From NCBI RefSeq assembly GCF_000189555.1, contig NC_017276.1: DNA of 64,000 nt; one strand, 5' to 3'. The stretch is from Saccharolobus islandicus REY15A (GTDB taxonomy: Archaea > Thermoproteota > Thermoprotei_A > Sulfolobales > Sulfolobaceae). This document shows positions 40,358-42,593 of this stretch, piece by piece. Every line of letters starts with the position of its first letter. Within the stretch, counting starts at the first letter, position 1. The notes under the pieces were generated by a model, which saw nothing but the letters and a program-made list of their open reading frames with translations, was not told the DNA's origin and did no database searches. The translations under genes were made by a program, and so were the position numbers.

Positions 40358-41113
40358 ATGCTAGAGCTCACTAAAGGTATCTTAATTGCTGAGGATCTAC
40401 CAGCACTTTACGTAAAACATGCTAATAGTGTAGTGATGTCCGACGTACACATAGGCTATGAAGAGGAGATGTCTAGAAAAGGTATATATATTCCTAGAAT
40501 ACAGAAAAAAAGATTTCTTAGTATAACGAATAGAGTATTCTCAGTTTTTAATACTAAGAAGTTAATAGTAAACGGAGATTTCAAGCACACCTTTGAAAAA
40601 CTTACTAGACAAGAAAAAGAGGAATTAAATGAAATTTTGAAATATTTAAAGGATAACGGAGTAGAAGTTATAATAGTTAGAGGAAATCATGATAACTATA
40701 TTTCTTTAGTTACGGAAAAATTTGATAATGTAAGATTAGTTGATGAGTTAGACCTTGGAGAAATACTAATAACTCATGGACATAAAGTAATAGAGCCGAG
40801 AAACAATACAACATACATCATAGGCCATGAGCACCCAAGATTGTCAATAAGAGATAAGTTAGGTTTCTCTAGGAAACTGCAATGTTTCTTGTCAATACCC
40901 ATAAAGGAAAGGGAAAACTCTCAAATTATAGTATTGCCTGCAATTGGAATATATCAAGCGGGCAATGATATATCATTAATACATTCAAATTATATGAGTA
41001 ATTTGATAAAAGAGCACGCAATATTAGAAAAAGCGAAACCATATGTTATAATTGAGGGAGAAGGTATAATGGAGTTCCCAGAATTAGGCTTAATTAAGAA
41101 CATACTTATTTAA
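40358..41113 (+). CDS. Calcineurin-like metallophosphoesterase
   Basis: SDVHIG, NGDFKH, RGNHD, THGH, GHEHP. Confidence 0.9.
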
Positions 41114-41162
41114 AAGAGGGATTTATAAATGCAGAATCAAAAAGTTTTTAAGGTGATCTTTT

Positions 41163-41759
41163 ATCTCCAATTCAGCGGTATCGTATAAACCCATTGTAAA
41201 TATAGAAAATATCGTGGCAACAGTTACGTTAGAGCAAAGTTTGGATTTATACGCTATGGAAAGAAGTATCCCCAACATAGAATACGATCCAGATCAATTT
41301 CCAGGATTAATTTTCAGATTAGAACAGCCCAAGGTTACTGCTTTAATATTTAAATCTGGAAAGATGGTAGTAACTGGGGCGAAAAGTACAGAAGAACTAA
41401 TAAAGGCCGTAAAGAGAATAATTAAGACACTTAAAAAATATGGTATAAAAATAATGGGCAAACCTAAAATCCAAATCCAAAATATAGTTGCATCCGCTAA
41501 CTTACATGTAAACGTTAACTTAGATAAAGCTGCATTCTTACTGGAAAATAACATGTACGAACCAGAACAATTTCCGGGATTAATTTTTAGAATGGATGAT
41601 CCTAGAGTTGTACTCCTAATTTTCAGTAGTGGCAAAATGGTAATAACTGGGGCAAAGAGAGAAGATGAAGTATCTAAAGCAGTAAAGAGAATATTTGATA
41701 AGCTAGCGGAGCTGGATTGCGTCAAACCCATAGAGGAAGAAGAAGAATTAGAGCTCTAG
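41163..41759 (+). CDS. tbp: TATA-box binding protein; probable non-canonical ATC start at 41163
   Basis: Two TBP repeats (NIVATV...[16 protein letters not shown]; NIVASA...[16 protein letters not shown]); first strand lies upstream of GTG 41214; AGGTGA SD at 41151-41156. Confidence 0.95.
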
Positions 41760-42593
41760 AAGCCTAAGTAAACCATTTATTACACTTTTACTTTTAACGC
41801 TTTTTATTCCCTTCTTCTCTAACTCCCTACTGAAAAAGGATACGTAAACTGGAGATTCATACATGCCACCAAAATAGTAGACCACATTAGAATTTACAGC
41901 TTTGCATACTATTTGCACTAAAGTAGAGAATTCTGACATACAACTATTCAAAATTCTAACTGCCTTTGTGCTATTTCGCTTTACAGCGTTTAACAAATTA
42001 ACTGAATATTGCGCTATTTTGGCTGGATTACAAGAGTTTTTATAAAGGAACCTCACTAGATCTTCTTCAGTTTTAAAATTAGAAAATTGGATTAAGCTTT
42101 TATCATTAGATAGCCCTTGAAACTCTCTTAACAACTCATGTAAGAACTCTCTACCTAACCAGAATCCAGAACATATATCGCCAACTAACCATCCTCTATC
42201 GCCCTTTATTATCCTTTTACTTCCATCAAAACCATATACTATACTACCAGTTCCTGCAATAGTTATACATCCCTTATTCGCATTAGACATAAGCACAACG
42301 TGAGCATCATGTTCTATGATTACCTTATCCGCGTATTTACTTAGAAGTTGATATAGTTGACTTTTTACCTCTTTCGCCATGACTTCACTGTCAATACCGG
42401 CTAAAGATATTGCAATTCCGTTAAATTTCTTATTGAATGACGAGATTATACTGCTTAATCTTAAAACTGACTTATAGGGGCCTACTTTATCTATACTTGC
42501 CGGTTCGTATTTGTACTGTCTTACTACTTTTTCACCATCATAAACGAAAACTTTAGTAGATGTACCGCCGGCATCTATTAATAGGTATTCCAC
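41748..42593 (-). CDS. BadF/BadG/BcrA/BcrD-type ATPase, N-acetylglucosamine-kinase-like
   Basis: [36 protein letters not shown]. Confidence 0.85.

Follow-up and report, generated by a model that had tools for sequence, protein, structure and literature searches.

The locus examined here is tbp of Saccharolobus islandicus REY15A (NC_017276.1), on the plus strand of a 64-kb stretch of DNA that we call the window. Assembly of every archaeal transcription initiation complex is nucleated by its product, TBP. At its 3' end, tbp shares 12 nt (41748-41759) with the 3' end of a convergent BcrAD_BadFG-family gene (41748-42593, minus strand). Within Saccharolobus this overlap is conserved, as is the order of the genes: TP_methylase, Metallophos, tbp, BcrAD_BadFG, DUF5622, DUF373. 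The features of tbp, including codons that database records use as its start, are:

41122-41129, plus strand: TATA box 1, TTTATAAA, the likely tbp promoter, with a transcription start site predicted near 41151-41153
41145-41152, plus strand: second TATA-like element, TTTTTAAG, with AAAG in front at 41141-41144
41151-41158, plus strand: Shine-Dalgarno sequence, AGGTGATC, with 8-nt complementarity to the 16S rRNA 3' end
41154-41156, plus strand: in-frame TGA closing the tbp frame upstream
41163-41165, plus strand: proposed initiation codon ATC, aligned with ATH in 22 lineages and with ATG in HS-7
41163-41759, plus strand: tbp coding sequence, 198 codons and the stop codon TAG (41757-41759)
41193-41195, plus strand: ATT, the start in 188-aa NCBI records (record P0129), rejected here
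41202-41204, plus strand: ATA, the start in 185-aa NCBI records (records P0002 and P0128), rejected here
41214-41216, plus strand: GTG, the first canonical start, encoding Val18 in strand S1, rejected here

From the upstream stop, the frame reads AGG TGA (41154) TCT TTT ATC (41163) TCC AAT TCA GCG GTA TCG TAT AAA CCC and continues ATT GTA AAT ATA GAA AAT ATC GTG (41214) GCA ACA. The original prediction took this layout to mean that TBP starts at the AUC codon, and most of its particulars are borne out by the sequence. TGA closes the frame; AGGTGA (41151-41156) stands 6 nt ahead of ATC, with TCTTTT (41157-41162) as the spacer; the frame is open from ATC to TAG, giving a 198-aa product; and TATA box 1 lies where it had been placed. 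The first canonical start falls within core strand S1, as the Val of NIENIVAT, and the likeness of this strand to IQIQNIVAS of repeat 2 is evident. The second BRE-TATA element is also present, but one base away from the position it had been given. A scan of the window sequence found no ATG, GTG or TTG in frame between TGA 41154 and GTG 41214, and ATC 41163 is the sole codon one base off ATG between the stop and the conserved YKP.

A chance origin of this arrangement is unlikely, since it is unique to tbp in the window and recurs in 22 distinct lineages. Counting both strands, the window contains 63 copies of GGTGA, roughly one in every 2 kb of each strand, and tbp alone joins this motif to an ATH codon (ATC, ATT or ATA) heading a long ORF that has no upstream canonical start. 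Nor is ATC a sequencing error, because 13 independent assemblies carry the same stretch from Shine-Dalgarno sequence to start. The 5' region with its ATC is identical in 11 of them (the window, L089-L093 and L104-L108), and the S. solfataricus contigs L081/L082 share the shorter stretch.

The product is a complete TBP. It scores 366 bits against NCBIfam NF001592 (cut-off 270) over residues 7-198, and Pfam PF00352 is recorded on it twice; a score above the curated cut-off together with two TBP repeats places it in the family. Its best match among solved structures is PDB 1MP9, the TBP of S. acidocaldarius (E = 2.5e-109).

We collected tbp loci from one genome per species, from exact-protein look-ups and from metagenomes, and counted genes with the Sulfolobaceae-type YK(P/A) N-terminal motif. 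They comprise 22 distinct regions from Shine-Dalgarno sequence to start, spanning Saccharolobus, Acidianus, Metallosphaera, Sulfolobus, Stygiolobus, Sulfurisphaera, Sulfuracidifex, Aramenus and further lineages. The S. acidocaldarius DNA was taken via its 166-aa model, the exact look-up (P0004) having given no gene call; that for S. tokodaii (P0158) gave none either. All 22 regions consist of GGTG(A/G), a non-conserved spacer of 5-6 nt and then ATH. The codon is ATC in 6 lineages, ATT in 5, ATA in 11 and ATG in none. Aligning the tbp 5' regions, as had been suggested as a check, thus reveals a near-cognate codon conserved throughout the sampled Sulfolobaceae, and the close relatives that might have carried ATG at the position of 41163 have ATC, ATT or ATA instead. 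The S. acidocaldarius sequence, GGTGA TAT ATT ATA CCT, is again devoid of a canonical start.

The codons right after ATH vary synonymously (Ser TCC/TCT/TCA, Asn AAT/AAC, Ser TCA/TCG/TCC, with YKP further on) and are therefore translated. Over the 7 codons ahead of ENIVAT, entropy is 0.44, 0.21 and 1.23 at codon positions 1, 2 and 3, a three-base periodicity. The spacer, which varies in sequence and in length (5 or 6 nt), is non-coding. Where it is 6 nt long, the TGA of GGTGA becomes an in-frame stop. In Acidianus hospitalis (L002/L010), A. copahuensis (L007) and Stygiolobus (L006), a stop codon stands immediately ahead of ATH, as in GTG ATT TGA ATC TCT AAC; since the stop adjoins ATH and the conserved Ser comes next, these three lineages have no other start codon available. 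More widely, 15 of the 22 lineages are without an in-frame canonical start upstream of strand S1, one of the 15 having only a GTG three codons before ENIVAT.

ATG is present at the tbp start of two related lineages, which indicates that this codon is tolerated there. Sulfolobales archaeon HS-7 has GAGGTGAT, 4 nt and then ATG AGC AAC GGT (MSNG), aligned to ATH-Ser-Asn. A metagenomic Sulfolobales-like lineage (L120/L121, 84% identity) has ATG CTT CCA TAC AGG without GGTGA. Close upstream of that ATG is a TATA-like element, which suggests a leaderless ATG version of tbp.

Several properties point to a near-cognate start: none of the canonical starts would leave the conserved N-terminal domain intact, a ribosome-binding site is found at working distance (6 nt in the window and 5-6 nt in 22 of 22 regions), and ATH is conserved in orthologues with coding constraint directly downstream. 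We propose, with a probability of roughly 0.8, that tbp is translated from the near-cognate AUC at 41163, which the Shine-Dalgarno sequence would place in the P site of a short-leader mRNA, to give the 198-aa TBP. Comparison strongly supports the start that the original prediction had put forward, through the invariant ATH, the constraint downstream of it, the stops upstream and the ATG of HS-7.

Gene callers have preferred GTG 41214, the only ATG, GTG or TTG in frame, and the resulting 181-aa TBP, the model given in the genome record of S. solfataricus P2, occurs on 112-128 contigs. That codon, however, is GTA, GTT or GTC in 16 of 19 lineages and GTG in 3, it has no Shine-Dalgarno sequence in front, and the 17 codons upstream of it are under coding constraint. 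In TBP structures of archaea, yeast, plants and humans the alignment begins at query residue 11-13, so a start at Val18 would delete residues 11-17 of a universally aligned core. We regard this start as very improbable. Initiation at the internal ATT 41193 or ATA 41202, near-cognate codons too and the choice made in the 188-aa and 185-aa records, is also unlikely. Neither has a Shine-Dalgarno sequence at a suitable distance, and Ser-Asn-Ser and YKP, which lie upstream of both, are conserved at the protein level with synonymous changes. The choice between internal ATH codons moreover differs between records of one species, which suggests that it is a product of annotation software.

It is conceivable that the conserved GGUG(A/G) is itself a GUG start near the 5' end of a leaderless mRNA, giving TBP directly in lineages where it is in frame and, in the others, a mini-ORF that stops ahead of the ATH codon or runs across it, followed by re-initiation at ATH. 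The start site predicted from TATA box 1 coincides with GGTGA, leaderless GUG mRNAs are translated by S. solfataricus, and three lineages have the arrangement GTG-NNN-stop-ATH. In 7 of the 22 lineages this GTG is in frame without an intervening stop and could be the start there. In 12 of the 22 it is out of frame. The window is one of these: here GTG begins an ORF of 11 codons that runs past ATC to 41188, so that re-initiation at ATC would have to run backwards. The spacer, furthermore, is not conserved as coding sequence, and spacing of 5-6 nt is typical of a Shine-Dalgarno sequence; we consider this reading improbable. A missing start could also reflect a sequencing or assembly error, a pseudogene or recoding from an upstream ORF. 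One ENA record (P0145) does read the TGA as Trp to give a 219-aa protein, and a 19-codon ORF in another frame starts from an ATG at 41129. Yet the sequence is identical in 13 assemblies and different genera share the layout, lineages vary in which stop codon lies upstream and where, and ATG 41129 is absent from other Saccharolobus lineages. Folding of 41151-41240 is no better than that of shuffled controls (z = +0.5), and an Rfam search of 40900-41400 gave no match. With an upstream ATG that is not conserved, stops that vary, and neither a predicted structure nor an Rfam match in these intervals, programmed recoding was rejected, and comparative data effectively refute error and pseudogene along with it. 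The ATG at 41129 overlaps the TATA box, and its ORF (41129-41188) is probably meaningless, given that this ATG is missing in other Saccharolobus lineages.

Archaeal TATA boxes usually lie near -26/-27 from the transcription start site. From this position and that of TATA box 1, the start site of tbp is predicted near 41151-41153, on or beside GGTGA, which would make the leader about 10 nt long. In 18 of 23 regions scanned, across genera, the start is preceded at 39-44 nt (mostly 40-41 nt) by a TTTATAA(A/G) box. An archaeal mRNA is classed as leaderless when its transcription start site lies within 5 nt of the start codon. In the window the distance from TATA to ATC is 41 nt, whereas likely leaderless genes there show a peak, though a weak one, at 27-34 nt. 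The supplements of Cappable-seq papers yielded no tbp start site entry.

Initiation at AUC 41163 would then proceed as follows. The dedicated promoter (TATA 41122-41129) would give an mRNA with its 5' end at or beside AGGUGAUC and with a leader of about 10 nt. Pairing of AGGUGAUC with the 16S rRNA 3' end would set AUC, 6 nt downstream, in the P site, where the initiator Met-tRNA (anticodon CAU) would be mismatched at the third codon position. The product would be the 198-aa TBP, probably with its initial Met removed, as residue 2 is Ser. The pairing amounts to 8 base pairs in the window and 5-9 in the other lineages, counts that depend in part on the GAUCA that we take to precede CCUCC in this rRNA. 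For S. solfataricus, the terminal CCUCC has been measured (PMC11698992). It is unusual for an mRNA to have its Shine-Dalgarno sequence right at the 5' end, and this counts against the explanation that we favour.

Efficiency of initiation at AUC would probably be low, as expected from knowledge gained elsewhere and from the action of aIF1, which in S. solfataricus destabilises non-AUG initiation complexes, according to work cited in PMC6237735. A weak start might keep TBP synthesis low relative to its mRNA and sensitive both to the stringency of start-codon choice (aIF1) and to how initiation is divided between the Shine-Dalgarno-led and the leaderless mode; we offer this as a tentative possibility, more probably wrong than right. 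If the near-cognate codon does limit TBP synthesis, it would form a family-wide link between the fidelity of translation initiation and the capacity for transcription.

In most of the 23 regions scanned, the tbp promoter has a pair of TATA-like elements (for example in the window, L002, L003, L006, L008, L084 and L094). In all Saccharolobus lineages TTTTTAAG is conserved at -18, where it overlaps the predicted transcription start site and the Shine-Dalgarno sequence. In Acidianus, Metallosphaera, Sulfolobus, Stygiolobus and Sulfurisphaera the second box lies at -27 to -29, a position from which transcripts would begin at the ATH codon itself. Binding of TBP at a second site of its own promoter could be autoregulatory, and the paired elements might in this way add transcriptional autoregulation of tbp.

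It is tempting to ask whether ATH is kept at the tbp start by selection rather than tolerated, gating TBP synthesis through a near-cognate codon on a Shine-Dalgarno-led mRNA. At least eight start-codon changes, one of them the ATG of HS-7, are counted on a TBP protein tree that is too poorly resolved to date them, 2 of its 22 inner branches being well supported. On the same tree, about seven changes at the third base are among A, C and T, and none is to G. With G at 11% of fourfold sites, its exclusion from the third position is not significant (P ~0.4 over about seven changes), and the same test gives 0.08 if the 22 lineages are treated as independent, which they are not. We hold such selection for an ATH start to be doubtful. 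Were it at work, TBP supply and global transcription capacity would track the stringency of aIF1 and the balance of Shine-Dalgarno-led and leaderless initiation (eS26), and other Thermoprotei TBP clades without canonical starts might be gated likewise.

Near-cognate starts on central genes have precedents. Bacterial infC, which encodes IF3, starts at AUU or AUA, and IF3 discriminates against its own start codon. Like tbp, infC has a conserved ATH start with a third-position mismatch to the initiator tRNA, and how efficiently this start is used depends on a factor for initiation fidelity, which we count as a trait that the two would share. In infC, however, IF3 feeds back directly on its own codon, and to our knowledge TBP has no role in start-codon selection or translation initiation. 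Since TBP is not a translation factor, it would have no loop of the infC type; the comparison is one of analogy, not membership, and does not transfer directly to tbp. Control of the tbp start, if there is any, would have to act via translation factors, be it aIF1 or another.

For Deinococcus dnaA, N-terminal mass spectrometry has confirmed that translation begins at ATC (Baudet et al. 2010, PMC2830850). As with tbp, this gene encodes a master initiator and lacks a canonical start, ATC is conserved in the family, annotated N-termini were heterogeneous until aligned, and residue 2 is Ser, hence the removal of Met. Unlike tbp, whose start is supported by comparison, dnaA is bacterial and its start was shown by mass spectrometry, and in tbp, unlike in dnaA, the third base drifts among C, T and A. 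A further precedent is ribosomal protein L12ae of Staphylothermus marinus (Smar_1096), for which an ATC start was deduced from alignment (PMC2678158). This too is an essential crenarchaeal gene without a valid start, but it was described in a single genome note without a conservation survey.

The 198-aa N-terminus is itself known. Swiss-Prot P58178 (S. solfataricus P2, 198 aa) begins at the codon equivalent to ATC, and Q9UWN7 (S. acidocaldarius, 197 aa) and PDB 1MP9 share an equivalent N-terminus; the exact 198-aa form of the window is also in UniRef and nr. Curators extended these proteins to the codon discussed here, in Q9UWN7 to the ATT one codon earlier. Those entries concern the protein, and we did not find in them the codon, its conservation or its meaning. 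Other records of S. solfataricus start at four codons other than ATC (167, 181, 185 and 188 aa), so that with the 198-aa form public databases hold at least five N-termini for the TBP of this species. Lengths within a single species scatter from 166/167 to 201 aa (records P0002, P0121-P0145 and P0149-P0200), and every genus is similar. The proposed start at a conserved AUC, AUU or AUA accounts for this disagreement between databases. A 2020 review of archaeal translation initiation gives AUG, GUG and UUG as the only start codons, and our literature search found no paper on an ATH start of archaeal TBP or on its conservation.

Truncated TBP models are missing a core DNA-binding strand and would be misleading in cloning, in proteomics databases and in the prediction of structures. 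A Shine-Dalgarno sequence, 5-6 nt and then ATH make up a simple rule by which TBP N-termini can be corrected. Moreover, the pattern provides a natural test mRNA, that of tbp, for the initiation assays that already exist in S. solfataricus.

Sulfolobaceae may not be the only group with ATH starts on tbp. In two other Thermoprotei TBP clades the protein has a long extension at its N-terminus (...SLDSYY... and ...AESYHDELAKKYF...) and the gene has no canonical start; their loci are L163-L165, L177, L166, L169, L170 and L176, and L058, L064/L149, L070 and L147. The two clades share G(A/G)G YGT G(A/G)G AYY ATH at the putative N-terminus, and in L051/L139 an ATG GTG lies three codons upstream of it.
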